DNA of 64,000 nucleotides from Lepidodermella squamata (Eukaryota > Animalia > Gastrotricha), in the NCBI GenBank assembly GCA_047495785.1, contig JBLDXI010000014.1:124001-188000 (forward strand), read 5' to 3'. Position 1 is the first letter of the stretch, and every line of letters starts with the position of its first letter. The translations under genes were made by a program, and so were the position numbers. A model generated the notes under the pieces. The model saw only the letters and a program-made list of their open reading frames with translations. It had not been told where the DNA came from and ran no database searches. Positions 25,308 to 52,385 of this stretch are shown here, one piece after another.

Positions 25308-25717
25308 AACCGATGAACTGACAGACTGACGGAGGGTGGACATCTCAGACATGTTGCAATCATTGCATGCCAAATTTGGAAAGATTATACACTTGATGCT
25401 TATTTGAATGCAAATTTTTTAAATGCTGTGTTTATTGCGACGTGCTTCCGGTGTTGAACGACTGCAGCTGCTCAATCTATAATAATAACGACGAGTTCTT
25501 TCTTCAAGTTTTCTTTATTTGAGTCTCTTAGCTTTGGGTGAAAAAATAAAAGCGAGGTAGCATTCCTGTCTTTTCAACTATTTCGGAAGATGGCGTATCT
25601 TACTTCTTGAGAAAAGTGGAATTATCCAAGAAATAATGGATTCTCATATTTTTGTATAAAATGAAGGAAATTGTTTATATTTTTCACCTGTGACCTGAGC
25701 TCCTAACAAGCTCAAAG

Positions 25718-26106
25718 CCGTGAACTGGAGTGCGCAGTGCGGTCACTTAGACATACCAAAATGCGACTACTTCAGCATATCGAAAATCGAAAATCGAAAA
25801 TGTTATGGTAAAGACCCCATGAACAGGGTACCGTTGGATAGCTTGTTTAAATAAGGGCAATCATTTTGAGTAGGCGGCTTTGTTTAAGCCGGCCCGAAAT
25901 TTTAATGAAAATAAAAAAATTCAAAATGTTCCCATAATGTTAGCTGTTATTTTATGTCCCGAAATAGGTTGTATTGATGTGCTATGTACAGGCCTTTACC
26001 CCATCCATGGGGTCTTCACCATACCATTTTCGACTTATGTTATGTAACAGTCCCTATTTTGGCATATCAAAGTGACTTCACTACGCAAAGTCACCCCAGT
26101 TGACGG
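25718..26106. mobile_element. MITE copy 2 (carried in the tandem unit)
   Basis: Same sequence as 23915-24303, offset +1803. Confidence 0.7.
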
Positions 26107-26282
26107 TAGCTCTGACGATAATTTCATGTTTCTGCTGAGTACTAAAACGGTAGTAGCCTTATAACCGAAACCCGCCAAATCTTACGCGAGCCTTACAGAT
26201 TGCGCGATTGGCAATTGGCGGCGATGAGCTCTGATGTCGGAAGTCATTTGCGAGATGAGTTTGCGAGTGTCTGAGTACATAT

Positions 26283-27110
26283 CGATTCTGCCGTCTCGGT
26301 CACGTCGAATGACCAATCGAAGCAACCGGTTGCTAGCACTCCCCTCAGCGAAGCGAGCGTTCCGAAGCCGGAGGAGAAGAGCAAAGACAGCGACGCGTTG
26401 TTGATCGATGCCGACATTCCAGTCACAGCTGAGCCGCCGAAGCCGGTAGTGGCTGAGGAGCCGAAAATCGCCGTTGAATCGGAATCTGAAAACGAGCACG
26501 ACGTGACGACGGAGAATGACGAGGCGTTCATTGTTGTCGACAACAAGAAAAAGCAGAAGAAGCATGCCAAGCAAGCGAAGGCGAAGGCGGCCGAAGCCGA
26601 GCGACGGGTTTCGGAGGCTGGCGAAGAAGAAGGTGACGAAAATGACAACCACCTCGACACTGCCAAGCTGGAGAAGAAGCCATCTCTCAGCAAGGTCCAT
26701 TCAGGTAAATGCAATGTGTTTCGAGTCTTCGGCAGCTCAGAAATTAGACTCATCGTGATCTCATTTTTTAAATTAAACAATTTTCGTTTGCCTTAGATTC
26801 GAATTTGAATGCCGACAAGCAGCAGCAAAAGACTGATGGCGATTCGAAGCAGCGCCAGGCTGGCAACAACGAGAACGAGGCGCCATCGTCGCTGCGTGTC
26901 AAGGTCGAAAAGGCGGCGCGAAGCCTGACGAACCTGTCGTCCAAGTCGCTGAAGACCATGGGCGTGGTCAACGGCGGTGGTGATGCGACGGCTACCGGCT
27001 CCTCGGCACCCACCTCGCCCAGCTCACCCCTGGCGGACATCTGCGCCGAGAACGTGACTGAAAATGGCAATGCCAACGGCAAATACACCATGCTCGTCAA
27101 CGACGAGTGA
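26283..27110 (+). pseudogene. Promoterless 3' partial copy of the 22339-23504 gene
   Basis: Third repeat unit, same truncation. Confidence 0.8.
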
Positions 27111-27532
27111 AACCGATGAACTGACAGACTGACGGAGGGTGGACATCTCAGACATGTTGCAATCATTGCATGCCAAATTTGGAAAGATTATACACTTGAT
27201 GCTTATTTGAATGCAAATTTTTTAAATGCTGTGTTTATTGCGACGTGCTTCCGGTGTTGAACGACTGCAGCTGCTCAATCTATAATAATAACGACGAGTT
27301 CTTTCTTCATTTCTTTATTTGAGTTTTCTTTATTTGAGTCTCTTAGCTTTGGGTGAAAAAATAAAAGCGAGGTAGCATTCCTGTCTTTTCAACTATTTCG
27401 GAAGATGGCGTATCTTACTTCTTGAGAAAAGTGGAATTATCCAAGAAATAATGGATTCTCATATTTTTGTATAAAATGAAGGAAATTGTTTATATTTTTC
27501 ACCTGTGACCTGAGCTCCTAACAAGCTCAAAG

Positions 27533-27921
27533 CCGTGAACTGGAGTGCGCAGTGCGGTCACTTAGACATACCAAAATGCGACTACTTCAGCATATCGAAA
27601 ATCGAAAATCGAAAATGTTATGGTAAAGACCCCATGAACAGGGTACCGTTGGATAGCTTGTTTAAATAAGGGCAATCATTTTGAGTAGGCGGCTTTGTTT
27701 AAGCCGGCCCGAAATTTTAATGAAAATAAAAAAATTCAAAATGTTCCCATAATGTTAGCTGTTATTTTATGTCCCGAAATAGGTTGTATTGATGTGCTAT
27801 GTACAGGCCTTTACCCCATCCATGGGGTCTTCACCATACCATTTTCGACTTATGTTATGTAACAGTCCCTATTTTGGCATATCAAAGTGACTTCACTACG
27901 CAAAGTCACCCCAGTTGACGG
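27533..27921. mobile_element. MITE copy 3 (carried in the tandem unit)
   Basis: Same sequence as 23915-24303, offset +3618. Confidence 0.7.
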
Positions 27922-28430
27922 TAGCTCTGACGATAATTTCATGTTTCTGCTGAGTACTAAAACGGTAGTAGCCTTATAACCGAAACCCGCCAAATCTTAC
28001 GCGAGCCTTACAGATTGCGCGATTGGCAATTGGCGGCGATGAGCTCTGATGTCGGAAGTCATTTGCGAGATGAGTTTGCGAGTGTCTGAGTACATATCGC
28101 ATCCTAAGTCCGATTAACGAGTCACTTACAGAAGGTATCAAGTGATGTGCCTTTAAACGATGCTCAAGTGTATTACGCTTGTGATGCAATAAAATCGGCG
28201 GATGCGGGCTCTGCTGTCTTGTGGGTGACCTACGGCCGTAGACACACGCGGGAATTATAGTAAACTGATGAGGGCAGGGCGCGCAGCTGGCCGCAGGTGC
28301 GCGCGCATTCATTAGCCGGCCGCCGACGCGTGGCTGTCCGGCGGTGAACCCGGAAGCACAGCTGAAAGCGACACTGTCATTCGCCGCTAATAAGTTATCA
28401 TCACCGCCGCTTTAGCCGCTCAACTCGACG

Positions 28431-30818: not shown

Positions 30819-33800
30819 TTATATCGTGTCGCTTACAAACATGTAGACATTTGCAGCAAGAAGCGTGTCCAGGTAAAGGATAGCAATCGCAACGTCGACA
30901 GCTCGCGCGTAAGTCATTCGCGGTAAAAAACCGATTCGCCGCGCCATAGTTACCATCAGCTTTGGCTTCGCCGTGATCAGCATGTACATTGCCAGTTCAT
31001 AGAGCGTGACTGCCGCCGTCATGGATGCGAGAATCAGGAGGTAGTTAGCGAAGAGAATCGGCTGCGAAGTCTTCGGCAAATGTTGAAGTGTGTCACTTTG
31101 TTGAATTATAATCGCAAGCATCATGGTACCACAAAAAGCTGGCCGGTCGGGTACGTCAGGTTCCATCATGACCGAACCTAGAGATAGCGCGACTAACAAA
31201 TAGCAAGGAACCATCATGTTTATCAGATAGTAATTAGTATCGCGAGCAAACGACAGCGTGATTTTTGCGTAGCTTGTGGTTGAGTTGAAGCGGGTCGTCG
31301 ACTCGACAACGCCGTAACTCTTCAGCTTGCCTGAGAAATGCCACGTCTCACTAGCCATATCATCAGCAGCAAGAACGAAGAGCCCGCCGAACGTTAAGTA
31401 AGTTGAAGATTCGTCGATTAAAAACGTAAAATCGCAGGTTTGACTATCGAAAGGGAAGTTGGTCAAATGGAGGTCGCATCTAGCATCAAATTGGCCGAGT
31501 CTGTTCCAGTGGTAGAAAAGGGTGCGATTTGGTCTAGTAGGATAGTAGACGATCTGCAATTTTTCGCCATAATTCGAATTTGACATGTAGAAGTCATTCG
31601 TGCTGTTGGCGAAAATTATGGCCGGTCGCCAAACATCGGTTCGTGTCGTGGTAACTAAACGCTCCTTGCCATTGACGAGAGGAGCAGTATAGTTTTGTTC
31701 GCAAGAGCTCACAATCCATTGTAGCAGAAGAGTTCCCCATAACGAAACGCGGCCCTCCATCTCGTCGATTGACACGATGCGTTCGACTCCGAAAGTCATA
31801 TAGATTTTTGTTCCCATTGAAGGCGAGCGCGATTCGCTATCAATGTACGGACATGGCTTCAAGTCTTCATAGGCAAGAATAGGAATTTGATTTCCGTCAA
31901 TGAGCCGCGGTATAGGGAACTCTGTGACTGGGTCAACAGAGTTTACTGAAGGTTCCAAGGTGGAGGCTGCCGTAGAAATCAAGAATTTTATTTTGACATG
32001 AGGTTTTATAACCTAACCTGCTTCTCTTCGAACTATCAACGTTGAAGACGAACTACTCGAAGAAGGCCGGATTGATGTGGCCTTAGCGCCTGCCGACGAG
32101 CTGAAACGTGGACCTAAGAGAGCAAAATCGATTGGTCTTAGTTTCATTCTGTTATGGCTGGTCATCATTACTAGTTGGTACAGCTGATGCAGGCGATTGC
32201 GGACCCAATGAAGTGCTATACGTAGATGTTGTCGGTGAAATACTTGATGACGATGAAGCAGCGCTATCTGCAGATGTCGAAAATCTTCAGTTTTTGTGAG
32301 AAATTCAAAGCCTCAGCGCTTACCGGTCGAGGAAAGAGAGATAGAAGGAGCAGATGATGATGAAGAGGAATCAGGGGATGAACTTGTTCCTGTGGAAGTC
32401 ATAGTTCCAGCTGAGAAAACTTAACAATTATTTTATAAATATAAAGCTTATTTACTCGAAGTAGTCGATGTAGGCACGTTAGCAGATGTTGTCGGTGGAG
32501 ATGTTGAGTCTGATACAGTAGAGTTCCCTTCAGTCGGAGTCGTTGCCCAGGTGGTCGTTGTAACAATCGTACTGCTGGTTGTTGGCTCGGCAGTCGACGA
32601 TGTTGTCTCTGGGGACGATGACGTAGATTGCCAAGTGGTTAGTTCTACCGAAGTCGATGCCGAGATAGATGACTTTGAGGTGCTGCTGGTTGCCTCGCTA
32701 TTTGTAGCCGTTGTTGTAGATTGAGAAGTGCTGGTAGAACTCGTAGTAGATAATGCTGTGGTACTGCTGGTTTGCTCTGCAGTTGTAGTGGTAGCCTCAA
32801 CGGTTGTTGAAGACGCCGTTGTCGGCGCTTCAGTTGTTGTAGAGCTGGTTGATTCCGTCGTGGTTGTAGTCGTAGTAGTGCTTGTAGTTGTCGTGAGTAG
32901 GCACGACCCAGGAGAAGTATTGGTGTAGTTAACCGGCTCGCACGATGCGGCTATTCCAGCGTTCAAGGACCAATGATGGCTGTATGTAAGGAGTAATGCT
33001 TGGTATCAGAATTACATAAAAAGACAGCAGAAAATACTATTTCCTGACCACAACAGTGGCGTTTCCATAGGCCTGGATCCGAAAATCGACACCAGCGACT
33101 GAGGAGAAAGAGGTCGAGTTGAAGTTATTCGTCTTGAATGCAGGTCCAACAGAACCATCTGCATTAATCGGAGCCAAAGCGATCTATTATAGGAAAAACG
33201 TCGAACATATGTATAATTGGACCGATTCCAGTAAAATACCGTCAGAAGGGGCCGGATGAGCTGCACAATCAACCGATAGCGCAATGAACCGTTGGAATGA
33301 AAGAAATTTCCGTCGACGTTGACAGTCCCTGCACATCGGAGGGGCAACTTTACAGTGTTAGGGTTGGTGCCGCTGGCAATCCACGTGAAAAATAGGCGCC
33401 CGTCGCCTAAGGCTAGCCTCTGCCAAAGTTGTAGCCCCCCGAACTGTCGAAGTGTATCATTGGTCGTATCTGAAAAACAGAAACGTTGACATTCGCTATG
33501 AAATGATGATTTCCTTATCGAACCCAGAACTTCGGTAACAGGAGCAACGAAGCTAATTCCAAGCCATCCTACAGAGCCATCTGTCAGAACTTGAACATCG
33601 AACTCTACCTCAACACGCCATTGAGAGGTTATTTGTCCTTTGGCTGTTTTCGCGCCAATGATGCCTCCCCAAGTCTGCGAGGCTTGAGTTGTTAGCAGGT
33701 ATCCATCAGCCATTTCGGTTGCTGTGCCAATCAGTGTCACACCTCTGGATCCAATGATAGAGCTGTTCGTCTTGTCAAATGAGTAGGCATCTTGGTATTC

Positions 33801-34821
33801 GCTGCCGACGTATTCACACGGTAAAAGCAAGGCGCTGCTACTTGGAGCCGGATCCACATAACCGGATGATCGAGTTAGATACCATGCATAACTAAAAATA
33901 ATTCGGATCTCATAGGCAATCAAGACAAAACTGCAAGAAACTGTACGATTTTCGAACTACAGCATTCCCGTAGTTTCCGAACAGGCCCACAAATGAAAAA
34001 TATTGACCATATGAAAAATGACCGATTTCTTGAACCAAAGCATTGGAAAAGCAAGTTGCAGGGGATCCAGGGATACCAGCTTCCGGAGCTATAGCAACCT
34101 ATATGTCAAGAAAACTGCTTACTGAACTCTCTCAGTTGAAATTGGAACAAACGGTAATGTAATTTCCGCGATTTTGCAAAATTAAGCGGAAACCCACGGA
34201 ACCAGCCGTTGAATTGAAAAGCCATGAGCTGCCGCATGCAGGTTGCGACACGATGTAGTTGTTCGCGTAAGAAGCAGTGCCGAGAACCAGTGGAACTTGA
34301 GTCGTGGTGGAAACTAGGGGAAAACTGTACCTCAAGTACATTGATCCTCTCGATTTCAGCTCGAGCCAAAGCCATAGTCCAGTAAAGCTCTGAATTGAGT
34401 CATAGTCAGCGGCCCCTGCCGATGCAACTGGAGCACCTGAAAACCCCAGGTTGAAGCCGAACCATCCAGGTGTTGCTACGTCTTGGTATGTAGCTAGAAT
34501 CTCGAATTCTATTCGCCACAACGAATATAAGCTGGTACTAGCAGTTGATGGCAATATGCTGAACCCGCCATATGTCACTGTCGCGTTGTTCAATTCGTAA
34601 CCCTGAGGAGTATCGCCGGGCATATAGCCGAAAGCATACGCCATAATAGTTGAGTTGGACTCGAGGCTACTATTTACGCGATCGAAGGACGCCTGGGGTA
34701 TGAAAACCGGCTCACCCGAGTAGTCGACGGGCAGATCCAACGCTTGCCGGTCAACAACTGGTTGAAATGCTTGGGATTCAATTATCAACAGGCAACAAGA
34801 GACAGCAAAGGTTGCGATCAT
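30819..34821 (-). CDS. Multidomain Cys-loop receptor: signal peptide + 2 L-type-lectin-like domains + Ser/Thr mucin stalk + pentameric ligand-gated ion channel (10 exons, 1171 aa)
   Basis: Exons 34821-34153, 34098-33947, 33891-33524, 33469-33240, 33183-33038, 32979-32456, 32410-32324, 32267-32172, 32113-32018, 31966-30819. All nine introns are GT-AG, 45-58 bp, with matching phases; 3516 nt open. Channel motifs: WRPAI, CDLHLTNFPFDSQTC, four TMs. Confidence 0.82.
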
Positions 34822-35419
34822 TTCGCTTTTTTTGTTTTTTTTTACGAATGTCTGCACTTCGGCGCAATACTTATAGCGGCTATTTCAGAAATCTACTACC
34901 TAGATAAAAACCTACGTCCTAACCACGCTTATTCAACGGCCTACCCAACGCTAAGAAATCCCGCCAGATGCGTGCTTTTTGTTCCATAATTTATTTTTGC
35001 GAGTCACCGATTCGATCAAATAGCCATCAATATTTCATGAATGTGTCTGAGCAGACCTCCGCGTCTGAAATGATTGTCGTACTCACTTGATGCACTGTCT
35101 ACCCTGAAATGTCGTGCTCATCCAGATTTCGACACGCCACATTTTTCGACAGAAGACAATGGCTTGAAAATCAAAAGTCACCTGTGCACCTGTGCACCTA
35201 GAAAGGGATTCTAGTTTGAGAAGTCTCAACCTTGTGATGACTTCAAAGAAGCAGGACGTTCCGAATAATCTCAATTATCCGCTATTTATTAGCAGATATA
35301 TACCGGCTATGAATCAATGTGCTATTTCGCAGATGTACACAAACGCCATTAAAAGATGTCAATTTACAAATCGAATTTTCGAATATAACTTATACGTTAC
35401 CTTGCTGAAGCTAACGGCA

Positions 35420-35471
35420 CCCTTGAGCCTGTGACGTAGATATCTACGTATCTACGTCAAATGCCCTTGAG
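35420..35471. mobile_element. 36-bp palindromic mini-element flanked by an 8-bp direct repeat (hAT-like remnant)
   Basis: CCCTTGAG at 35420-35427 and 35464-35471. Inner ends CCTGTGACGTAGATA / TATCTACGTCAAATG are inverted at 13 of 15 positions. Confidence 0.5.
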
Positions 35472-35859
35472 GTTTGCGCTTAAAGCATGCCTCGTTTTAT
35501 TCATTTCAACTATAATTTACGCGCTTGCGCACCTGTCCTACATAATTTCCGAAATTTATCGAAGGGGCATTGCACATGATTTACCATTAGTAACAACAGC
35601 TCCCATCAAAAATACTGCATTCGGATGACAGCATTGCAGCAGCTAGTGCTCATCAAGTCAACTCGAGATTTATTACTCGATAAGAATTTTAGGGAAATCC
35701 ATGCTTTTGAATCAGTCGGAGAGGCAATTATCTCATAATCGATAAGCAGGTGAACGAAATTTTGTTGCAATCAAGATTTTTCAATTGTCAGATTCAGTTC
35801 GCAGTTTTGATGCAGAAAAACGGTGGCAAAGTACGCGATTGAACCTGTAAATTGCTGCC

Positions 35860-37853
35860 ATGCATTCAACGGTGATGGCTTGCAATTTCGTAATGGCGTT
35901 GTTTGCGATCCTTCTCCCAGCTGGCTGCCAAGACTTTGCCACTACAACCAATCTGGCCGGTGATTTACCCCCGATTTGCCATGAAATCAAGTGTAAGCTT
36001 ATCAAAAAAATGCGGCCCAGCTTTCATTCTTTTGCGATATAAATCACAGATTCAGATTTGGACGTGGAGCAGTTTGCATTTGCAAACTACTCGAAAATGA
36101 GCAGGCCGGTTCAAAACGCAAGCCAACCTATCACCGTCCTGTTTTCAATTGTTTTTGCCCGTGTCGTTGACATAGTAAGAATGAACTCGTTCACTTCATT
36201 TGAATTCACGCCCCAAATTTGCAGTTTGAGAAAGATCGTAAGATTCTCATCGATGCTTATATTCAGCTGCAATGGGTTAACGAGTTGATCAATCAGTGGA
36301 CCTCGGTCGAGCCATTCAACTGTACGACAAAGTTGATCGCTCCCACGACTAAAATTTGGATTCCGGACGTCTCTATCGTTAATACACCTCGTGAGTTTAT
36401 CTGAATTGTTTAGGAAACAATATTTAATGTCGGAATTCGTTAAAATTAGAGGACAAATATTCCTTGCTGATGATTCGAGGCCACAAGGTTGAGTTGACAT
36501 CAGACGGGACGTGCATCTACTACCCGAGTGGATACTTCAATGCTTCATGCTCCATGGATCTTCGATATTTTCCATTTGACGAGCAGGTGTGTGTCCCTGT
36601 CGTTTTTCTCTGTGAAGTCATTAGGAATTACATGTTTTAAGGTTTGCATGATCCGTTTCGCATCGTGGGCGTATCCTGCCGAAATGCAGAATCTAGTCGC
36701 TTCCAGCTTACCTATCGACTTTGACTTGGCCAACTTCATAGTACGATTTTATTTTGTTTAGCTATAGTTAATTTTGTAAATTTTCCGTTTAAGGAGCATG
36801 GCCAGTGGCACATTGAAAGCACGGAGGCGGTCAGCAGTCATATATTCAACCCGACAACTGAAAAATCTTACGATGAGGTGGGGAAATTGTTCTTTCCTAT
36901 ATACACTTCCTAATGACCCTTCAATTTAACTAGGTGCAGATTTACATCTACCTCAAACGGAAGGCGAGACATCTTTTATTTAACCCGGGCTTCAATTATT
37001 ACTAATAGTTTCCCATCCTTTAGCCAGCTTACTACCTTATCAACGTGATAGTCCCTGTCCTCATCATCGTCATCAGCGAAATTTCGCTGTTTTCCCTGCC
37101 GGTAATTTGGTACATTTTGGAACCTTCAAATTTTTTTACTTTGAATTTCCTATTAGCTAACGCGGGCTTTGAAGCTACGAGTTTCCTTCAAGACTTTGCT
37201 AGCTTTTGGCATGTTTCAGTAAGCTTTGCTGATCTTTATGACTTCCTTTTATGCCATTACTTGACAGAACAATCATGCTACACGATTTACCAAGAGACAG
37301 CAGCTCATCTCTTCCCTTATTGACCATTTTTCTCGACATCACGATGGCTTACATTGGCTTGGTCCTGGTAGGGGAAGGCTGTATATTCTTAATGTTAAAC
37401 GTCGGTGGTGAAGAGCATGTAAGTTACTAGAGAAGTAATGAATATGGTTGCATTGTTCAGCTCCGCTTATAGAATCCTCCACCCAACTGGTTGGTTCGCG
37501 TTTGCATTTTTTGTGGCCCACTGTTTGGTGTTCATGATGGACAAGTTCATCATCATTTGAAAAAAACCAAGCGACAGCGGCATCTCGAAAAAGAGATCGC
37601 ATCAATATCAGCGATAATTCTTGCTCACAGCGTGCATTCTCAACAGGAAAATGCCGAGCATCACGGAGGTGACGGTGGCGAAGAACTGGACGACGAAAAG
37701 CGAATGCATCGCAAATACGGCCATCATTCTTTCCACAGGTCGTGGCTGCTCATCGCTCGGCTAACCGAACGCGTCCTGTTTTTTACCTACGTCATCGCCA
37801 TCATTTTAACTCCGATCGTTATTTATGAGGTGTTACCGCCACTGAAGCAGTAG
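35860..37853 (+). CDS. Divergent nicotinic-acetylcholine-receptor-like Cys-loop subunit (non-alpha), multi-exon
   Basis: Signal peptide, YSKMSRPV, WIPDV, Cys-loop CSMDLRYFPFDEQ|VC, FASWAY, no vicinal CC in loop C, M1-M4. Includes a GC-AG intron at 36964-37023. Confidence 0.9.
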
Positions 37854-38243
37854 TGAATCGTCAGAAAATCATTATCATCCACTTTTTGACTAATAAATGT
37901 CACGAAGCAATCATTTGCAACTGAATGGTTTTTTGGAAACCGGGAAACCCAAACCAGGCATAAGAGGCTGGTATAAGGAATGCTATTTAGCAGTACGAAA
38001 AATTCCACAAAAAAGCAACTTTGTCAGCATGTCAAACAGTTTTATTATTGTTTGTAAACACATCTCGTGAGAGTATGCCTGGTTTGGGTTTCCCGGTTTC
38101 CAAAAAACCATTCAGTTGCAAATGATTGCTTCGTGACATTTATTAGTCAAAAAGTGGATGATAATGATTTTCTGACGATTCACTACTGCTTCAGTGGCGG
38201 TAACACCTCATAAATAACGATCGGAGTTAAAATGATGGCGATG
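37793..38243. repeat. 170-bp inverted repeat (37793-37962 / 38074-38243), 111-bp spacer, copy 1 only
   Basis: 38074-38243 is the reverse complement of the channel's last codons and 3' UTR. It is absent from copy 2 (55024-55202 differs). Confidence 0.95.
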
Positions 38244-38773
38244 GCCGCCAGGGCCAACGTCAGAGTTTGCAAGAACTCGACTGAGGAAGCCGAAGCTTCG
38301 CTGGGTTCCGTTTTCGGCGGAATTGGGAGCCCGATGTTAGCGCAGTCCTCACTGCTGTTGTTACCATTTTGCTCCATTGGCGCTGCAACGCCAGGCGGGC
38401 CATTGCTGCTCGCCGAAGAAGATCTTCGTCTCGATTTTGCGCGTCTGTTTTGAAACCATATCTGTATCCTTGTCTCAGAGACACCTATCGCTTTCGATAG
38501 CTGTTGCCTTAGCTCGCCGTTAGGGTACTGCGTTTGAGAGAACGTGTTTTCTAACAGCGAAAGTTGTTGCAGCGAAAATGTCGTGCGATGCCGCCGTCCG
38601 TTTTGTGCGACGCGCTGCGCCGATGATAGGAAAATGGCAGGCAATGAACACCGGCGATGGCACTCGACGTGGGTCTTGGCATGTAAGATCACTGGGACGC
38701 TGCTCATACCTTTAAGGCGCATCGAAACCGTCGATCCATCACTAAGCCGACTCGCGTCGTCATCGCAATCCAT
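38183..38773 (-). CDS. PRD-class (Q50) homeodomain protein, chimeric allele ending in the channel M4 tail (196 aa)
   Basis: RRHRTTFS...QYP...RIQIWFQNRRAK. First ATG at 38773 (the ORF track starts at an upstream GTG). C-terminus IAIILTPIVIYEVLPPLKQ is identical to the end of the channel. Confidence 0.85.
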   Translation of the reverse strand: MDCDDDASRLSDGSTVSMRLKGMSSVPVILHAKTHVECHRRCSLPAIFLSSAQRVAQNGRRHRTTFSLQQLSLLENTFSQTQYPNGELRQQLSKAIGVSETRIQIWFQNRRAKSRRRSSSASSNGPPGVAAPMEQNGNNSSEDCANIGLPIPPKTEPSEASASSVEFLQTLTLALAAIAIILTPIVIYEVLPPLKQ

Positions 38774-39690
38774 CGTCCGCGCCGTATAATGTAGGTTATT
38801 TTTTGCTAATGAAAATTCCAAAATAATTGCCAAACTAATTGCTCCTATTATGTTGTTTCCGAAGGCCAGCTTTGTCACGCATTTATTTTATCGATACTTA
38901 TTTATATTAAAATCTACGCAATATATTATGAGAACACGAAGTGAATTGCCATGCATTGCCCAATTTCCGTCTCCCTGGTTTTATCTATAATTATGTTCGC
39001 TGGTTGTTTCCACAGAAGCCGCGTGTTTTTATGAACATTCCGCGATATATTTTCGGCTAACAGCAATTTTCGCCGATAAAAACGCGACGTAAAGGCGCAG
39101 CTGTGCTGAGCAAACAGCCGCACATTCACCTTAAATTGTAAGATAATTAAATCATTATTATAATATTATCATTAATTACGGCGTCTAATTACTGGGCTTG
39201 GAGATATGAGCCAGGGACATGTAAAAGCGGTAGAAGACCGTGCTCGATAAATTGGTAATAGTCCAGTAGATTAAGCAGGATGAAGCCGGAATTGCAGTCC
39301 AACTTGCGTAATTGTGATATAAGTGGGAGGGGCAATAAAATGATAATTAATGGAGACCTAATAATGCACTATGAATGCCAAATTCAACAACGTTTTTTGG
39401 CGTATGTTTACAATATCGCACCCTATATATGTGTAATTACCGATAACTTTTTATTGCTGTCGAGAGTACGGAAATAACTGTGACCTGATAGGCACAACCT
39501 CATTTTTTGCTGTAACAAGTTTCACCGGGTGCATCTCCATAAAAAAACCAAGCCTCGGACTATAGGAAATAACTAAATAACTAAAAGATTGGGGAACCTT
39601 CCACGCGATAGAATTTTTTTTTATTGGAAATCATAAATGTTCACAGTAATGAAAATAATGTGCAGTCAGCCCTGTGTTTCAAGTCCTTAT

Positions 39691-41616
39691 TCAAAATTGT
39701 AAACATTCCAGTGATTTTGAAATGCGAACCTGACCTGCAGGCTTTTGGATATTGTCAGTCGAGAAAACCTCGCTGTTCGGCGATGCGTGGTCGTTGTCGA
39801 AGAAAGCTGTGCTAGTCTCGTTGGACTTTTCATCATCGGTCCGATTACTGCTCACAGATGCCGATTTACCTTTGCTTCCTTGGATTAAATGAAACAGCTT
39901 CGAAAACGTCTTCAGCCAAGGTGAACTGCTCGCCGAGCCCTTACGTTGCCCACAGCAAAGCATGTCCCTAAATTAAAAAAATTGCCTTGAAAGATTATGC
40001 TCTCCCCATTCGACGATTACCTTATCAAGCCGAGAAAAGCTCGATTGAACAAACAGAAAATCGGGAAAGGAATAGCGTTGGATGAATATTGCAGCAGGTT
40101 GAAAACTGGATTCAGCGAGAATAGGACATCGGGGCGCAGAGATAGAGCCTCCATCAACTGGGATCTCGTGGTTTCGTGAAGGTTCATCATACTCATGTAG
40201 AGCGTCAAAGGCAAAGACAATGCTAGGAATAGCATGTTTTGTGCAACCAGCATTCTGCTATGCAAATGATGAAAGGGAAAAGCGATTAATGAGTACTCAG
40301 CATTCATCATTCAGCCCACGAAAATTAGTTAATTTTTGAGAAACTATCTACTAACCTGGTTATAGTTTTGGCGAGCATATTCTGATGACTTGTACGAGGC
40401 GTTGAATTTATCCGAGCTGTAGCTGCTTTTTTGGCGGCGTAGCGGCTTTTCATCGGAAGATAGACGGGCTCGGGCTGGTTGAGACCAATGCAAGATGCTG
40501 ACATGGCATGGAAACTGCTAGGTGCTGCTAATAAAGCTGGAAAGGTTAGATAGCTTCGATGCTCCGGAGTTTCGCAGCATCTTGTCCTATAAGGCAATCG
40601 GGTGATGAAGCAAGGGACCAAAATTATGAAAATACTCACTCGATCCTCAAAGACCGCTTTAGAAACAATGCCGAACAATGTTGCTGGCTACTGCGGCGAT
40701 TGATTGCCTCTGAAAATCGTTTCTTCTGCCTTGAACTTACGAGAACAAGTGCGGCCGAAAACGCTGTGACTAGAATGAATGGTAGAAGCGTTGCGACCCA
40801 CGCGTCCACGATATGATAGTGCATCAAAAATGTGATCCAACTCTCATCGGTTGTACATTGCATGCCTTGAGACGATGATTCATCAGTGCCATCAGGAAGT
40901 TCAAACCTGGCTGCCAGTTGGTAAGGAATGGCCAGGGCAGCGCTTATAACGTGGCACGAGATAGATGCGATAATTGCGAACTTCGCGTCGATTCTGCTGC
41001 GGTAGAAGAAGGGAGCAGCGACCGAAGCCATTCGATCGAAAGCAATGAGGACAAAATGCAATGATGAGGCATAGGCTGACATCGAAAAACAGGTTTTCAA
41101 TTGTAATGTGTCAGAAAGAAAGAATCATACTCAGCCAATAGGTCATCAGCACGTGACCATAGCAGCCAATTTCTGAGAGTCCTCGCACTGACAGTTGGGG
41201 GAAAACGGCATCTAGGTAGTAGTTGATGCCGAAGCCTGCGATCGCGGAGAATCGATTAATTATTAATTGAGAAGTTATAGGTCGATGGAAACTTACCGGA
41301 TGTCAAGCTGAGCAAATTAGTGATCGCCTGGGATAGAATCAACACGATCGTTGCGCAATATTTGGTCTTCTTCTTCGTAAAAGCTTGAAAATTTGAAGAT
41401 ATTCAAGGATTCAAGAAAAAAAATAGAATATAAGTACCCACCGAGGATAATGAGGAGATTCCCGAAAATTCCTAAAATCACAAGCGGAGTGCCACAGGCA
41501 ATGTAAATTTTCCGACTTTCCGACCATGGATCCGACGCCTGTTCTTCGACGCAACTTCCTAGTTGCAAAATCGAGGCAGCTATCAGAAATCGATGCATTC
41601 GCAAAACTGCTGGCAA
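39691..41616 (-). CDS. Class A (rhodopsin-like) GPCR, neuropeptide-receptor-like, 7 exons
   Basis: Signal-peptide-like N-terminus, TM1 GIFGN, TM3 AFDRMASV, TM5 TLLPFILV, long ICL3, TM6 FLALSLP, TM7 SNAIPFPIFCLFN, CC palmitoylation site. Exons join in frame through GT-AG introns. Confidence 0.85.
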
Positions 41617-42484
41617 CGTCCCATATCCCTGAATATTTGTACGATGATAGCGATCTGTTGTTTTGCTTGTTTAGCAGCTAGGTTAGCACTAGGAGCTAGG
41701 TCTCGGTTCCTAGCCAGGCGTGGTGGTCCAATTATAATTAGGACCCGCCGGCGGGCGACTAATGAGTTGCGATAACAGCCAACGCACGCCTGGTTTCGAA
41801 TTTCGGCCTGGCTAACCAGCCAAGCGTGCGGAGATCGCATCTTCAAGTCAAATTAGCGAGTTATTCGATAAAAAAGAGACGCAATTTACGCGCCTCAAGT
41901 CCTATGATATATTTGCGTCAGTTTATACTTTTTACTATTCTGAATTTTATGAATGACGATATTATATAGATCCAAGTATAGATAAGACTTTGATGAACTG
42001 TCGATCATTGCGCCTTTTATTTATTTTCCGTAATTGTCTGAACGTTCCAAAGTAATAATAATTATCAACAGGCCAAAAAGCAGCTATAATATATTTGCGC
42101 TGACTCGTCATATCAGGTTCGCCGGCTCAATGTATGACGATGAGTCTTCAACGACACAGCGAGTAACAACAGCATACGGTTCATGCGTAAAAAACACATA
42201 AAGCTACACAAATTCTTGATCCAATTCGAACACAACATCGAAACAAAAAAGCGCGCGCGCGATTTTTTTTTTACAAGAGAGCAAGCGTCATACACGTAAG
42301 CAGATCAGTTTCAGTTTTCCAGCGATTTTTTTTTAACAATCTTCAACTCGAAAAATTTGCGTAGCAACGGAGAATTCATGTATAACGATTCATGGAAATA
42401 GTATTTTGAGTATGAACCAACAAAACGATGTCGAATAACTTATGGCGAGTTTCTAGCTTCATCGAAAATTTAAATCGTATAATA

Positions 42485-45400
42485 TCAAACTCGGACGTTT
42501 TGCGCGTTGACGTAGATAGATTCTTCAGCTGGCGCCTCGTCCAGCTGGTTCAGCAGTCTTTCCGTCGATGATGATATCGAAGATACATCAAGGTTTTGCA
42601 TATCGTGATAAGCCTGGGGCGCTACATCGGCCCGCCCAGCAGCAGGGGTTCCATTCATTTCTATCAACCAAAAGTTATATAATTATTTTTATTTATGTCA
42701 TCAGTTTTTACCGTCGATGTGCCGTTCGCAATGAGGTCCTAGGAAACCACGTTGGCACCGGCACCGGCCCGAGCGCCGATCACAGCCCTTGCTATTCGGC
42801 GGTGGCATGCAGTTGCACGTCAAACTGCATTCCGGGCCGAAATGATACGGCTGGCAGCGCCGATGATGTTCTGTCAAACTCCGAGCCGTGCTCGCGAAGT
42901 GCCGCGCTGTCCTTCGTGCCTCTGCACTTCGCGTCTCCGCCGGTCCGATAAGAACGGCGTCAGTGCTGTTACCCGCGACGGAATCTGTCGCGTTGTCGAA
43001 ATCTTCGACTCGATTGCGGTTTAAAAAGCCGCCGTCACGCCTCAATTGAGGCAAGTGGTGCCGCGTGATATTGCCGACTCCCATGCATCGGCCTGAAGCA
43101 CGATCGCATTGGTTACTCCTACATAACGGCGAGCAGGATCTGTTGCAATTGATGCCCCAGTAACCGGAATCACATTCTATAAATGAAAACATTCAAAAAC
43201 ATTTGATTTTTCACTAAAAGAGCACTCACCATGTTCGCAAAGGGTTCCGACGTAACCAGGCCGCTGACAGGTGCAGCACCCAGTCACGTGGTGACAAACG
43301 CCACCATTTTGGCACAAGCATTTATGGGCGCACCGAGGCCCGTAAGTTCCGACAGGGCAGTGGTCAGCGCATTTCGGTCCAGTGAAGCCGGAGTTGCAAA
43401 TGCACTGACCCGTGACGCGGTCGCAACCGGCCGAGCCCTCTGGGTGGCAGTTGGCGTTTTCGCACGACTCGGCGCAGTTGCGACCAAAGACGCCGGCTGG
43501 ACATGTTTTCGAACAGTGCCTGCCAGTGAAGCCGGGCGCGCAGTCGCAGACACCGCTAACTGGGTCACACCGAGATCCATTATGCATACAACGGCATCGC
43601 CGCATACAGTCGTGGCCGTAGTAGTGATTCGGACACTGATGATCGCAAAGTGGGCCGATGTAGCCTGGTCTACATCGACATTGTCCCTTGTCATCGCAGG
43701 TACCATTCGCGTGGCAAGGGCACACGTCCTGGCATGCGGGTCCGAAGAACCCAGGAGGGCAACCTGACAGTGGTTGATCTATAAAATCAAATTAGTTCGC
43801 ATTCAATTGAAATATTTATAGGTCACCTTGATCAGCTGGGACCATCAACATATCCTCGCCCTCGACCATTTCCTTAAAACTGCGAACTTCGACCTCACGA
43901 CTAGAGGCAAATGCAACAGTTTTCTTCGGCTGGTTGCCATTTCGCTTCCGATCGAAACGCCCATCTTTGCTAGATATCGATGAAACGCCATCTTTATTTG
44001 GCTTTAGCCTCGTTCTCTGGGGGTGGCGATGTGTTGCATTCGGGTGCTGGTGATGGCGGTGTCGGGTTGGCGACCGGGATCCGTCAGTTGCGTGGCTGGA
44101 TCGGGGCGAGTTAAGATCGCTCAAAATCATCGTCTCCAACATTCTCTCCCGACTTCGGCCATCTTCGTCCCGCCGCCGCGTTGTCTCTATCCTGGCTGTA
44201 CTCGTGCTTGGCTGATCGTTGAACTGAGCATAACCAGACCCATTCATATCGCCCTGTTGATGCATGTAAATCGCAAATTCCTCGGCAACAGAGTCACGAA
44301 CAGGCGTCTCTTGCAGCTGTTTTACGTCGACTTCCTCCATCGACGGCGACTCGAGGCAGATTCCGGTCACGTGATGGCAATTGTTGTAGCCGCACTGGCA
44401 TTTCTGCTGGCAATCGGCGCCGTAGAAGCCGGGCGCGCACTTCTCGTCGCACGCGTCGCCGATGTAACCAGGCGGGCAAATGCAGGTGCCGAGGAACCGG
44501 TCGCAAGTTGCATTTTCATTGCGGCAATCGCACGTTGAGCTGCAGTTGGCGCCGTAGAGACCAGGCTGGCACGCGACATCGCACCGCTCGCCTGTCCACC
44601 CGCTGGTACAGATGCATCGGCCATCGATGGGTGAACAGTCGTCACTGTTTGCGCCGCAAGTACACTTCTGCCGGCAGTTTTGCCCAAAAGATCCAGCGGC
44701 ACATTCTAAATTGATTGAAATTCAGATAAAGCTAAATGAAGGCAAACTTAGAAACTTACGCTGATCACATTTTTGCCCACGGTAACCGGGCTCGCAAATG
44801 CAGGCGCCGCTCACTACGTCGCAGCCTTTCGTGAAATGGGACGAGTTGTCGTTGTTGTTTCGATAGTTGTTCATTGAGATCGATGATGCATTATTGTTGA
44901 AAGCTGAAGCGGGAAGCGACGGAACGTACTCACGAGGCGGCGGTACCGGGCATTCGCAACGCTGCTCGCAATTTACACCGTAGAAACCATCTTGACACGG
45001 CTCACAGCGCTGCAATTCGGGCGAGTAATAAGTTCCAACCGGGCAGTAACAAGATCCTACAGAAAAATTCCTGATTCAGAGTGAACAAAGAAAAGGAAGA
45101 ATTTCACCTGTAGCAGGTTCACAACCAACAGCTTCGAGGTAGCCGCCTGAAACTGTATCCATCGAAAGCGAGTCCAGCTCGGAAGCGTATTTAGCAGATG
45201 AAAATTGGAAGCCGCCACCTGCCAGCGGTGCCATCATAACGGAGCAGTTGCACGCCTGTGAGCATTCAGGGCCGAAATAGCCGAACGGGCAGTCTTCGGC
45301 ACACTGCACGCCGATTTTGCCGGGCGGGCACACGCACTTGCCCGAGACTGGGTCGCAGCCGTAGGGTGCGCAGTCGAGGCAAGCGTCCAGACACATGGGT

Positions 45401-48400
45401 CCATATCGACCGGGTGGACAAGCTGTCATTTCATCGAAAATTAACTCACGTTCAATGTAATGATATTTTGTACTGACGGTCTGTAGCGTCATATCGCAAT
45501 TACTTTTAAATATCTAATACTCAGCTATATTAGTTATACGGGGGTGAGTATTGGGATCAAAAAAGCTGACGTTCGCTGACTTACGAAGTGAGCAGGTATC
45601 TCCATAGTAGCCGTTCGCGCAGTCGGTTCGCGGGCACTGGCCGGATGCTGAAAAAACATCAACGCAGGGCAATTAAAATGCGGTGCGAAATTCGATAATA
45701 TCAATCGGCGGCGCGTCAACGCCGACGAAATGTCACGTACCGGGATCGCACAGTAGAGAGCAGTCATCGGGGCACGTTGCCGAACAGTTCGAGCCATAGT
45801 AACCCGCGACGCACGGCTCGTCGCACTTGTCGCCGCGAAAGCCACTCTGGCAGATGCACGCACCAGTCTGCGAAAAAATTATGCGAAAATTTAATTTTAA
45901 TTTTTAAGGAGGGTTAATTCTTACAGTAGCATTGCAGGCTTGGGTGTGTTGCATGTTGCAGTCGCACTCGGCCTCGCAGAATTTTCCGAAGCGACCAGTC
46001 GGACACGGTGCACAGCTGGGTCCGAAGTAACCAGGCTGGCACTGGCAGAAGCCGAGGTCAGGATCGCACTCGCCCGACACGCACTTACTAGAGCAGCGGT
46101 TGGCGCATTCGGGCGGGCCGTACAAGCCTGATGCCACCAGCAAAGACAACAAGCATCATCATCATCATCATTTGAATACGTATACAATGAGAATGAAACA
46201 AAAACAAAAGAGGCCAGCACGGTGAGTAAACACTCGGGCGAGATTTCGCTCGCCTCTCTTTATCAAATTCGGTGTGTATGCGAAGGGCCCGTCGAGAATT
46301 CTTACTGCTGAGATAAACAATAACAAAGCCATTAGACAAGAGGCGGGGACACGCTGCTAAAAAAAATCGGCGTAGCACGCACGCGCGTTCAATAATTGAA
46401 TTTCGCGCAGGCATGTCATTTTTTTCTCGCATCTAAGAAATTATTGCGCCGGCATCATCGCATATGACGAACCAGTACTGTAGCGTATGAATAGCCGCTA
46501 TTATAAGTTTATTGAATCGCGGGCATTTTGCGACCGCGACGCCGGCTCACTGCAGAACAATAATCTCGGCTGTGAAATAAGCCTCATCGATACGCGCGCG
46601 CGCGCGCGAGCCCATTACAAAGCCGCGCCCTCTTGCGCTGGCCATTTTTTGGCGATCAGGCACTTGCTAAATCGCTTTTGTCGTCGCAATATTTTTCATG
46701 GCGCGCGCGTGCGCGGTGAACCTAATAGCTGGCGATTACGGGCGAACGACCGCACCTCTAGCTAAAAAACTGAATGCCACACAGTGCGGCGGCTGTAAGC
46801 TTACAACAATATGCGAAGACATGATGTGAAATGCATTAAAAATGTCAATGGCGCGTGTGTGCTGTGTTTGTTTTACGAAAATCGAACGTGCGATATAAGT
46901 TCGAACGACAAGAAATTAAAGCATCCGGTCATAACAAAGGCGCCGCACGCCCTCGTCGTCGAGTGGCTAGCATTTACTCGCCGTTTTTTTCCACTCCAAC
47001 GGAAAAACGCACCTTTCGGACAGCCGATTTGACAACGCTCGCCCGAAGTGCCGGCTGGGCAGAGGCAGCGCCCGGTGGCGCGGTCACACGGCGCCTTGTG
47101 TTGGCAAGGACCACATTCGAGGGAACAGTCAGGCCCGTAGCGTCCCTGGATTCATCGATTATTTATCCATAAATTATAGGAAATGATGGTTATATACCTG
47201 TTTGCAAACACTGGGCTGTTGATCAGCTATCGGCGGCGTCGGGGTACTCGGTGGCTCGGGCTCGTTGACCTCGGCAGATTTTAATAATCTCGGAACGAAT
47301 GCGATTGATTCTATACGGATCTTCGCCGATGGGGCTGCCCCAGTGCCTCGTTGATCGGCGACAGGTGTCATTGAGGCATTGTCAGGCGCCAACAAATTAT
47401 TTAGATCCTTGAAACCTAAAAATCAGAATATTACTAGGAGGTGCCTAAATAAATGAAGTAAACAAACAAGTCGCTTTATCGACGGGCGACAATTGGTAAC
47501 CAGGGCGACATGCGCAACGATAAGAGCCATCAGTATTTATACAAATGTGATCACAGATTGGGAACGAGTTCGAAACTGCCGCCTCAATTATTCGAACGGT
47601 CCGATTCTCGGCGCATTCGTCAATGTCTAGAAATAAATAGCAGAAGAAATAGGAATAGTGAGGTGATTCGCAACACAAACTCACCGATACAACCGCATTT
47701 GTTTGCTGCTAAGCGGAATCCAAGCTTGCATTGGCATTTGAAAGAACCTATAAATTTTTCAAAGTTAACGAGTTTAATCTTAATTGTAACTTATACCTGG
47801 GGTGTTTATGCATGTCTCGGCGCAGCAGTGAGTTCCAAGGGAGCATTCGTCAACGTCTAAAAATCTCAAGCTCGTTTAATTCATTGATCTCTTATTTCTT
47901 GGATAGCCTCACCTAAGCAGCCAGTCCTGTTCGAATCAAGTTTATAACCGGAACCACATGAGCATACAACACCTACGAAAAATGTGAGCAATATTAGAAT
48001 GATCTAGAATTCAGTTAGTTGAGATATTTAAGGCTGGTATCGGCGAGGAATCGATATTATAACAAACCTGCGGGTGTGTCCTGGCACAGTTGCTCACAGC
48101 CTCCGTTTTTGTGGCGGCACGACGCCGTGACCTCGGCCACTTCGCGGTTGTAATCAATGCGCACAACTGTCGGCGCGCGCTGATTTTGCCGCTGTTGCTG
48201 GCTGGCTACTTTCGGTGCTCGATCAGCTGCTGCAAAAGCACAACAAAAACAACACATTGCGATCATTCCGCTATATTATGTTCATCAATTATTCATCGGT
48301 AAACATCAATAAAACGACAAAAAATCATCAGCTCACATGCGGCCGTGCGGCTGGACAACAGCGCCGCAGCCGGCGGGGCAGCGGCTTGGGGAGCAGTCGG

Positions 48401-49841
48401 TGATTTCGTGACGTTGCTAGCCACAGTCGAGTTTCCATCACTCTGAAGACAGGTCCTGTCGTCGTCTTGCAACGTGTAACCGGCGTAACACTGGCACGAG
48501 AACGAACCGACGGTGTTTCGGCAAATCTGGGAGCAAGTGCTCGCCCGCTCATCGTCCTCAGGCTCACTTTCCTCCATGCTATAGATTCGGATAGGTTTGA
48601 ATTCCGGCTGCCCGTCCATTTGCTTTTTCTCAACACACTCGTCCACGTCTATATAAAAATTATATTAAGTGAGCAAATTTGGTTCAAAATTGAGATCTCC
48701 CTTAATTTTCTGTTGCATTTAATTTGTATGATTATTTAATCGCTAACCCTCGCAAGACCGTTTGTCAGCAGCCAGTCTGAATCCGGGATAGCAGTCGCAG
48801 ATGACTGACTTGCGTTCCGACGAGGTGAAGTACTGCCGGCGGCGGCATATGTGAGCGCAGCCGCCGTTGTGAACCGAACAGCTGTAGAAGGGCGCAGCTG
48901 ACGACGACGCCGCCTCGTCGACAAAGGCCAGCGTCGTCGTCTGCGTCGCGGCGACTGATGGCGCCGGAGTCGACACGCTGCGATTCCCGACGAGAGTGTG
49001 AGTGACAAGGTCGACAATTTCAACCGGTTCACCTGAATCAGTAAATTAAAAAAAAAGCTGTAAAAAATTCTGCAGAAATACCAATGCAGGAGAGGCCATC
49101 GGGAGCGAGGCGTCGGGGCAGTTTACATGAGCAAAGGTAACTGCCGAACGTATTCTGGCATTGCTCTTGGCAGCCGCCGTTGTTTTGGGCGCACTCGTCC
49201 ACGTCTATGCTGCATGTTTTGCCCTGAAGGCCAGGTCGGCAGCGGCACCGGTGACTGAAAATTCCGGGCCGGCAAAGTGAGGCGAATCCGCACTCGGTGT
49301 TGTCGCACGACCGGTAAGGGCAGCCAAAGTCCTGCGAGCCGACGCGAAACCAGCCGCGGCAGCATGACGGCTCGGCGATGACCTCGGGTATAATAATCGG
49401 CTCGAGAGTGTCGTAATAAATTAATCTACAAATAATTAGGTAAAATAGAAATATGAGATAATGCTCAACAAACTTTTGTTCCCGCTTCAGACACCCTACG
49501 CCGTCGGTTTCCTCCTCGCTGCCGGTACAATTTTGAGACCGATAGGTTAAATAAGGACCCGGTTTCGATTTACGGCAAAGCTTCCAATCACGCCTCAGTT
49601 GAATCGATTTGCGCTCGCAAACGTTTGGCCTGTAAAAAAGTTGGGTAAAATCAGAAAACAATTCGATTGTACGATTCTCTTACATTCCATTGCTTAGCCT
49701 GCGAGGCGAAGGTGTTCTTTGGTATGAACGACGGGTGGCATATCCATAAGGTAGTTCTTCATCTTCGGAAACAGGTGAATCCCAGAGAGGATGCTGCGGG
49801 TCGTCGTACGAGATAACTTCCTCGCCGCCGCTATCAACTAA
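42485..49841 (-). CDS. MEGF6: MEGF6-like protein (EMI + Ca-binding EGF + laminin-type EGF repeats), copy 1, 5'-truncated by the duplication junction
   Basis: EMI domain (PNVC...CCRGW), DVDEC/DIDEC EGF-Ca repeats, then many CPxGxYGxxC repeats. No TM found. Start and signal peptide are missing at 49841. Confidence 0.75.
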
Positions 49842-51787
49842 TAGTGCTTGTAGTTGTCGTGAGTAGGCACGACCCAGGAGAAGTATTGGTGTAGTTAACC
49901 GGCTCGCACGATGCGGCTATTCCAGCGTTCAAGGACCAATGATGGCTGTATGTAAGGAGTAATGCTTGGTATCAGAATTACATAAAAAGACAGCAGAAAA
50001 TACTATTTCCTGACCACAACAGTGGCGTTTCCATAGGCCTGGATCCGAAAATCGACACCAGCGACTGAGGAGAAAGAGGTCGAGTTGAAGTTATTCGTCT
50101 TGAATGCAGGTCCAACAGAACCATCTGCATTAATCGGAGCCAAAGCGATCTATTATAGGAAAAACGTCGAACATATGTATAATTGGACCGATTCCAGTAA
50201 AATACCGTCAGAAGGGGCCGGATGAGCTGCACAATCAACCGATAGCGCAATGAACCGTTGGAATGAAAGAAATTTCCGTCGACGTTGACAGTCCCTGCAC
50301 ATCGGAGGGGCAACTTTACAGTGTTAGGGTTGGTGCCGCTGGCAATCCACGTGAAAAATAGGCGCCCGTCGCCTAAGGCTAGCCTCTGCCAAAGTTGTAG
50401 CCCCCCGAACTGTCGAAGTGTATCATTGGTCGTATCTGAAAAACAGAAACGTTGACATTCGCTATGAAATGATGATTTCCTTATCGAACCCAGAACTTCG
50501 GTAACAGGAGCAACGAAGCTAATTCCAAGCCATCCTACAGAGCCATCTGTCAGAACTTGAACATCGAACTCTACCTCAACACGCCATTGAGAGGTTATTT
50601 GTCCTTTGGCTGTTTTCGCGCCAATGATGCCTCCCCAAGTCTGCGAGGCTTGAGTTGTTAGCAGGTATCCATCAGCCATTTCGGTTGCTGTGCCAATCAG
50701 TGTCACACCTCTGGATCCAATGATAGAGCTGTTCGTCTTGTCAAATGAGTAGGCATCTTGGTATTCGCTGCCGACGTATTCACACGGTAAAAGCAAGGCG
50801 CTGCTACTTGGAGCCGGATCCACATAACCGGATGATCGAGTTAGATACCATGCATAACTAAAAATAATTCGGATCTCATAGGCAATCAAGACAAAACTGC
50901 AAGAAACTGTACGATTTTCGAACTACAGCATTCCCGTAGTTTCCGAACAGGCCCACAAATGAAAAATATTGACCATATGAAAAATGACCGATTTCTTGAA
51001 CCAAAGCATTGGAAAAGCAAGTTGCAGGGGATCCAGGGATACCAGCTTCCGGAGCTATAGCAACCTATATGTCAAGAAAACTGCTTACTGAACTCTCTCA
51101 GTTGAAATTGGAACAAACGGTAATGTAATTTCCGCGATTTTGCAAAATTAAGCGGAAACCCACGGAACCAGCCGTTGAATTGAAAAGCCATGAGCTGCCG
51201 CATGCAGGTTGCGACACGATGTAGTTGTTCGCGTAAGAAGCAGTGCCGAGAACCAGTGGAACTTGAGTCGTGGTGGAAACTAGGGGAAAACTGTACCTCA
51301 AGTACATTGATCCTCTCGATTTCAGCTCGAGCCAAAGCCATAGTCCAGTAAAGCTCTGAATTGAGTCATAGTCAGCGGCCCCTGCCGATGCAACTGGAGC
51401 ACCTGAAAACCCCAGGTTGAAGCCGAACCATCCAGGTGTTGCTACGTCTTGGTATGTAGCTAGAATCTCGAATTCTATTCGCCACAACGAATATAAGCTG
51501 GTACTAGCAGTTGATGGCAATATGCTGAACCCGCCATATGTCACTGTCGCGTTGTTCAATTCGTAACCCTGAGGAGTATCGCCGGGCATATAGCCGAAAG
51601 CATACGCCATAATAGTTGAGTTGGACTCGAGGCTACTATTTACGCGATCGAAGGACGCCTGGGGTATGAAAACCGGCTCACCCGAGTAGTCGACGGGCAG
51701 ATCCAACGCTTGCCGGTCAACAACTGGTTGAAATGCTTGGGATTCAATTATCAACAGGCAACAAGAGACAGCAAAGGTTGCGATCAT
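49834..51787 (-). CDS. Junction-derived truncated gene: signal peptide + 2 lectin-like domains only (558 aa, ends TTTTSTIS*)
   Basis: Exact copy of exons 1-5 and the start of exon 6 of the 30819-34821 gene. Reads ACT|ATT AGT TGA across the junction (stop 49836-49834). Confidence 0.7.
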
Positions 51788-52385
51788 TTCGCTTTTTTTG
51801 TTTTTTTTTACGAATGTCTGCACTTCGGCGCAATACTTATAGCGGCTATTTCAGAAATCTACTACCTAGATAAAAACCTACGTCCTAACCACGCTTATTC
51901 AACGGCCTACCCAACGCTAAGAAATCCCGCCAGATGCGTGCTTTTTGTTCCATAATTTATTTTTGCGAGTCACCGATTCGATCAAATAGCCATCAATATT
52001 TCATGAATGTGTCTGAGCAGACCTCCGCGTCTGAAATGATTGTCGTACTCACTTGATGCACTGTCTACCCTGAAATGTCGTGCTCATCCAGATTTCGACA
52101 CGCCACATTTTTCGACAGAAGACAATGGCTTGAAAATCAAAAGTCACCTGTGCACCTGTGCACCTAGAAAGGGATTCTAGTTTGAGAAGTCTCAACCTTG
52201 TGATGACTTCAAAGAAGCAGGACGTTCCGAATAATCTCAATTATCCGCTATTTATTAGCAGATATATACCGGCTATGAATCAATGTGCTATTTCGCAGAT
52301 GTACACAAACGCCATTAAAAGATGTCAATTTACAAATCGAATTTTCGAATATAACTTATACGTTACCTTGCTGAAGCTAACGGCA

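Follow-up and report, generated by a model that had tools for sequence, protein, structure and literature searches.

A fold-back replacement in one assembled copy of a tandemly duplicated homeobox gene of Lepidodermella squamata, absent from independent sequencing contigs

The window analyzed here is the whole stretch of 64,000 nucleotides taken from the gastrotrich Lepidodermella squamata (assembly GCA_047495785.1, contig JBLDXI010000014.1, positions 124,001 to 188,000), to which all coordinates refer. It contains a Cys-loop channel gene on the plus strand that is convergent with a homeobox gene on the minus strand, and both belong to a unit that is present twice, head to tail. Three sequencing runs, designated X1, X2 and X3, were placed on 32800-38799 in the form of Logan contigs, not raw reads. 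The contigs of X1 have a word depth of 90-130, and 18 of the 20 are at least 99% like the window. Since they run through introns that X2 skips, X1 is genomic DNA; it comes from the same or a nearly identical organism, perhaps from another individual or strain than the assembled one. X2 consists of RNA, with contigs that skip the channel introns and leave 32800-35799 empty. X3 gave no contigs on 32800-38799.

The channel gene was recognized from its upstream exons, which match Pfam Neur_chan_LBD and encode the loop FPFDEQVC, and from an exon that begins with the M1-like stretch PAYYLINVIVP. Its last coding stretch (37476-37853, plus strand) encodes a His-rich hydrophilic loop followed by a terminal hydrophobic helix and closes with the stop codon at 37851-37853. 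This helix reaches 2.16 in its best 19-residue Kyte-Doolittle window, and its position in the gene suggests that it is M4; Pfam Neur_chan_memb found no match in the last exon even at E = 10. Spliced RNA contigs of X2 cover the last coding stretch and skip GT..AG introns of 50-55 nt (36175-36224, 36585-36639 and 36741-36793), indicating low-level expression of the gene and very short introns in the organism. X1 contains a second form of the last channel codons at 37802-37855 with about 40% of the depth (43 vs 66). This form differs by two synonymous changes, 37802 C>A and 37832 G>T, by 37853 G>A, which turns TAG into TAA, and by the loss of 2 bp directly after the stop codon. It occurs in neither assembled copy and is either an allele or specific to one copy of the duplication.

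The homeobox gene is intact in the second copy of the unit, where its open reading frame (55090-55740, minus strand) encodes 216 residues plus stop with a C-terminal FWRPWE (Pfam Homeodomain E = 5.7e-21). The protein ends in ...FWRPWENPANPCIR, or, given at greater length, in ...LLLTAFWRPWENPANPCIR. Its homeodomain has 60 residues, Gln at position 50 and the recognition helix WFQNRRAK, as in the paired-like class, and the best named relatives are Prop1, Mixl1, Sebox, Alx1 and aristaless. The sole closer relative, P0001 from an ENA metagenome contig, is 54% identical around the homeodomain with 40% of the query aligned. P0001 ends in ...RPWRPWEDKVRNL, in a further form ...QQRPWRPWEDKVRNL, and the two proteins have in common an L-x-x-LTL motif before the C-terminus. 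In both of them, WRPW is followed by Glu and lies a few residues from the C-terminus; a W-R/K-P-W/Y motif was found in 0 of the other 142 proteins retrieved. Because so distant a relative keeps WRPWE, the WRPW tail is conserved in a small family, and the second copy represents the ancestral state.

Homeodomain proteins usually recruit Groucho via eh1; the WRPW motif belongs to Hairy and Runt (PMC4901127). The tails of the native protein and P0001, with WRPW-Glu near the C-terminus, resemble the Groucho-binding WRPW/WRPY tails of Hairy/Hes, Runt and Ripply reviewed there, although the carrier here is a paired-like (Q50) homeodomain protein. Judged by these motifs, the protein would combine a paired-like homeodomain with a putative Groucho-binding tail, which is an unusual combination. 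The homeobox mRNA is about ten times deeper than the channel mRNA in X2 and unspliced across the open reading frame. A candidate intron within this frame (GT at 38711 to AG at about 38610) was discarded, as it is unused in the corresponding X2 contig, which is collinear with the DNA. At the locus of P0001 (L001:8001-8525), a multi-EGF gene lies 1.4 kb downstream of the homeobox gene; in the window, a homeobox gene and a multi-EGF gene adjoin each other only across the tandem junction.

The minus strand also bears, upstream of the homeobox gene, a fragment of a rhodopsin-type 7TM receptor (40639-41124, 7tm_1 E = 2e-9) and a large multi-EGF gene resembling draper/MEGF/PEAR1 (42704-49679), both of which were duplicated along with the unit. 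Farther to the left, a 709-residue open frame on the plus strand (18564-20690) matches RVT_1 with E = 6e-27. Its best matches are metagenomic proteins at about 30% identity, and relatives also carry endonuclease/exonuclease domains, so the element is LINE-like. A unit of about 1.8 kb occurs three times in tandem at 22677-28099, with 99.3-99.7% identity between the copies and long open frames on both strands.

Self-BLAST of the window revealed the head-to-tail duplication, with a period of 16,966 bp and near-identical copies. Copy 1 occupies 32873-49838 (16,966 bp, 99.98-99.99% against 49839-64000). Copy 2, which by self-BLAST and base-by-base comparison bears the native homeobox gene, begins at 49839 and extends past the window end at 64000. 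The left block pairs 32873-38057 with 49839-55023 at 99.98%, and the right block pairs 38233-47033 with 55199-64000 at 99.99%. Compared base by base, the copies differ outside the replaced segment described below at a single position, G/A at 32875, right at the duplication boundary; the 8,798 bp that follow that segment contain 0 differences.

The duplication is also present in X1. In the contig of the tandem junction, 30 loose letters at 32876 equal window positions 49812-49841 and are joined to 49842 onward. The contig of the left flank (32800-32905) has a depth of 71 vs 133 for the first contig within the unit, and the tandem-junction contig has a depth of about 64, as calculated from the first-bin depth of 129.6 and the 30 letters placed. 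The left-flank depth of 71 and the junction depth of about 64 add up to approximately the body depth of 133, as a truly tandem arrangement demands, with single-depth junctions and a double-depth body. An assembly artefact is ruled out, as X1 contains both junction contexts, each at about half of the body depth. The 16,966-bp tandem duplication is thus real, and it is extremely recent. Its left breakpoint lies inside a Thr-rich exon of a minus-strand gene, the far end of which encodes a Cys-loop ligand-binding domain (30822-32012), and its right breakpoint lies at the 5' end of the multi-EGF gene. A minus-strand open reading frame (49683-49916) spans the tandem junction at 49838/49839. Two positions in the Thr-rich repeat immediately before the duplication boundary, 32859 and 32870, have other bases in X1 than in the window at full X1 depth, which is either a strain difference or an assembly error.

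The one substantial difference between the copies lies at the 3' end of the homeobox gene, where copy 1 lacks 179 bp that are present in copy 2 (55024-55202) and has 178 bp (38058-38235) in their place. The missing segment encodes the C-terminal 37 residues with FWRPW and the stop codon, and it continues into the 3' UTR. The insert is composed of a 16-bp filler (38058-38073), located at the first switch point, and the reverse complement of 37801-37962. Together with the sequence that follows, it creates an inverted repeat with two arms of 170 nt (37793-37962 and 38074-38243), 100% complementary and 111 nt apart, which is the sole inverted repeat of at least 40 nt within 3 kb in the whole 64-kb window and is absent from copy 2. 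The left arm, the template of the inverted copy on the plus strand, begins with 58 coding nt, namely the last 19 channel codons and the final base of the codon before them, and continues through the stop codon into 109 nt of 3' UTR that contain AATAAA. Ordinary intergenic sequence common to both copies (37963-38057, corresponding to 54929-55023) separates it from the filler. The right arm, on the minus strand, is the exact reverse complement of the left arm, and its last 8 nt (38236-38243) are a microhomology, TGGCGATG, common to the inverted arm and the native rejoin site. In both the homeobox and the channel gene, TGGCGATG encodes Ile-Ala in the same frame. The flanks of the replacement are collinear with and identical to copy 2. 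As single-stranded DNA, the region would form a perfect hairpin of -233 kcal/mol (z = -41). An exact inverted copy of 170 nt together with a junction match of 8 nt (about 1.5e-5 per site) is far beyond chance. The replacement has no detectable age: the arms are 100% identical and the copies are otherwise identical.

Several other origins of this structure were considered and rejected. An older quasi-palindrome corrected to a perfect one is ruled out because the native 179 bp aligns with its replacement like shuffled sequence (score -18, compared with -19 +/- 6 for shuffled sequence). The filler has its best match in the window over 10 nt at 13291, and nearby only 6-7-mers were found, both at chance level. 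The first 8 nt of the filler equal the reverse complement of the first letters of the Tn5 mosaic end, and short stretches resemble a SMRTbell stem. The adjoining letters continue neither the Tn5 nor the SMRTbell adapter, and we regard these likenesses as chance and not as an adapter remnant. A simple fold-back read with a missed adapter is ruled out by the geometry, for the filler is off the symmetry center and is set apart from the left arm by 95 nt of ordinary sequence.

On paper, the replacement creates a chimeric open reading frame (38183-38773, minus strand) of 196 residues plus stop with Pfam Homeodomain E = 4.9e-21, of which the last 17 residues are channel-derived. The chimera and the native protein have the 179 N-terminal residues in common; after residue 179 the chimera reads IILTPIVIYEVLPPLKQ and stops, and its last 19 residues are identical to the last 19 of the channel. 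The 19-residue Kyte-Doolittle window at 173-191 of 196 scores 2.43 as opposed to a maximum of 1.31 in the native protein, and the tail is predicted in silico to form one hydrophobic helix no more than about 30 residues from the C-terminus, as in tail-anchored membrane proteins. About half of this hydrophobic run, LTLALAAIA, already belongs to the homeobox protein.

The initial annotation had described this structure from the sequence of the window, and its statements on the sequence all held. The coordinates, the exchange of 179 for 178 bp and the composition of filler and inverted channel 3' end proved exact on sequence comparison, and the 8-bp microhomology that encodes Ile-Ala in both genes and keeps the frame was found as claimed. 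Translation confirmed the loss of FWRPW from the copy-1 frame, the stop codon and AATAAA indeed came with the copied channel segment, and the proposed hydrophobic C-terminal run agrees with the Kyte-Doolittle values. The supposed gain of the channel's M4 helix stood only in part. Channel C-terminal residues were acquired, but only 17 of them are new after Ile-Ala, the first half of the run, LTLALAAIA, is native, and there is no Pfam membrane match. A one-in-three chance suffices for a kept frame; the open frame of the chimera is probably an accident.

We next turn to the independent data. Contig 7 of X1 (1,069 bp, depth 90.2) covers 37856-38057 and 38236-38799 with the native 179 letters between them, unbroken. 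The X1 depth in the bin 38000-38199 is 26.1, exactly 90.2 x 58/200, and that in the bin 38200-38399 is 73.9, exactly 90.2 x 164/200. As these depths equal the share of contig 7, the filler, the right arm and both junctions are free of any other contig. Among the X1 contigs, at their depth of 90-130, nothing was found on 38058-38235. Two controls lie in the same data: the contigs break at the true tandem junction (32876) and at the variant of 37802-37855, where the two forms are 66 and 43 deep. Since X1 splits at genuine branch points, contig 7 should likewise have been broken by a fold-back present in one copy out of two. Logan contigs drop minor variants, and an allele in about a quarter of the copies or fewer could be missed. 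In the RNA, X2 contig 15 (828 bp, depth 55.4) is the native homeobox mRNA, collinear across the open reading frame and with 149 native letters past 38236; the X2 contigs contain nothing of a chimeric transcript on 38058-38235. In the JGI metagenome contigs, the junction had 0 matches and so had a native control stretch; the organism is thus outside that collection and this null result says nothing.

These data bear on the biological claims of the initial annotation, which had proposed a newborn variant of the gene sheltered by an intact duplicate. The intact duplicate exists, as the tandem junction and the twofold depth in X1 demonstrate. The junction itself found no backing in independent reads, being absent from the X1 contigs while the native form runs on an unbroken contig. 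A chimeric mRNA did not appear either, as X2, the sole RNA data set, contains the native mRNA alone at depth 55. The notion of a newborn gene of this organism accordingly finds no support in X1 and X2, which contain only the native form. Both X1 copies appear native and WRPW-tailed, and the native form is the transcribed one. The replacement probably does not reflect the gene as it exists in the sampled animals.

The proposal of template switching fared better, as the anatomy fits a strand switch with two jumps, in that an inverted copy of nearby sequence, a filler and a microhomology of 8 bp are all present. In such an event, a 3' end of plus polarity would stop at 38057 and gain the 16 nt of the filler. 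The strand would then fold back onto the plus strand 95 nt behind and copy 37962 down to 37793, using either its own strand (snap-back) or another template at a fork as a partner. Finally, it would re-anneal to its proper template through the 8 nt of TGGCGATG, 179 nt ahead. We infer the order of the jumps and the setting of the event from this anatomy.

Three known processes would leave similar products. Short template switches in vivo make such inverted replacements, as described by the four-point model (Loytynoja and Goldman, 2017; PMC5453318), and the present case is alike in that a stretch is replaced by a nearby reverse complement between collinear flanks and that the ancestral state can be recovered from a second copy. 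Here the ancestral state is known from copy 2, X1 contig 7, X2 contig 15 and P0001. Unlike the published switches, however, the copy of 170 nt is long, a 16-nt filler marks the first jump, and independent reads do not back it. Polymerase theta end joining with snap-back synthesis gives the same pattern of a deletion with an inverted flank copy and unplaced letters, sealed by microhomology (PMC4912351; PMC5068794; PMC5728401). At our locus, a 179-bp deletion, an inverted copy of the flank and 8 bp of microhomology are all present; the insert is far longer than typical, and the likeness is one of sequence only. The third process is amplification by phi29, in which inverted sequences with intervening deletions account for more than 85% of chimeras, and priming on 2-21 nt of complementarity gave rise to more than 70% of the junctions (Lasken and Stockwell, 2007; PMC1855051). 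The replacement resembles these chimeras in its nearby inverted sequence, intervening deletion, short complementarity and absence from other read sets, but differs in that two jumps restore the original strand and a filler was added. The letters by themselves cannot separate replication switching, polymerase theta repair and amplification.

What favors an event in one or few molecules is the combination of no detectable age and no read support. We therefore estimate a probability of about 0.6 that the replacement is a strand switch in one or a few molecules, in vitro, somatic or very rare, which the assembler wrote into copy 1. The switch would have taken place during library preparation or amplification, or alternatively as a somatic or very rare change. 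Against this stands the fact that a change normally needs several reads to enter a consensus assembly, and the very presence of the replacement in the assembly argues for an allele that is really carried by copy 1 in the germline or by clonal inheritance. Such an allele would be private, of low frequency or heterozygous, very young and with no demonstrated function, and would be the cellular product of template switching during replication or of end joining by polymerase theta with snap-back synthesis. The 16-nt filler and the return to the original strand are equally typical of cellular repair, and the 179-bp deletion, flank-templated insert, filler and 8-bp microhomology form a classic cellular signature (PMC5453318; PMC5068794; PMC4912351). 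Moreover, X1 deviates from the window at two bases (32859 and 32870) and has a variant foreign to it, so that it is not strictly identical and maybe represents another isolate, and a heterozygous change in one of two copies would have about 25% of the depth, which contig building could remove. However, no contig of X1 or X2 bears the replacement and the native contig is unbroken, and a nearly length-neutral exchange (179 to 178) would be coincidental for break repair. Inserts made by polymerase theta are usually far shorter than 170 nt, which also counts against an inherited allele. We consider such an allele possible but doubtful.

A fixed paralogue of the species, encoding a homeodomain protein that is tethered to a membrane (tail-anchored) or lacks its corepressor, with the old function left to the intact copy, would be suggested by the kept frame, the stop codon and AATAAA that were brought along, the score of 2.43 at 173-191, above the customary threshold of 1.6 for membrane helices, and the existence of the intact duplicate. 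Yet the junction is missing from X1, although the duplication is there at full twofold depth, and from X2, in which the native gene is well expressed. An event without age gives no sign of selection, and the one-in-three chance explains the open frame. Such a paralogue is very improbable. We thus return to a strand switch in one or a few molecules as the preferred origin of the replacement.

For now, the main value of the locus is one of caution, as the assembly holds a length-neutral, microhomology-sealed fold-back without backing in the available reads. Two by-products are more solid than the chimera, namely the recent 17-kb tandem duplication and a paired-like homeobox family with a conserved WRPW tail. 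It is unlikely, on the present evidence, that a heritable and very young allele exists in which one template switch put the neighbor's stop codon, poly(A) signal and half of a membrane helix onto a transcription factor, with a predicted membrane-tethered product. If it did, a homeodomain protein that recruits a corepressor through WRPW would have been made membrane-tethered while a fresh duplicate kept the old function. A single slip of replication or repair would then have yielded an in-frame chimera of two convergent neighbors, sheltered by a brand-new duplicate, and the birth of a gene by strand switching between convergent genes would have been caught in the act.
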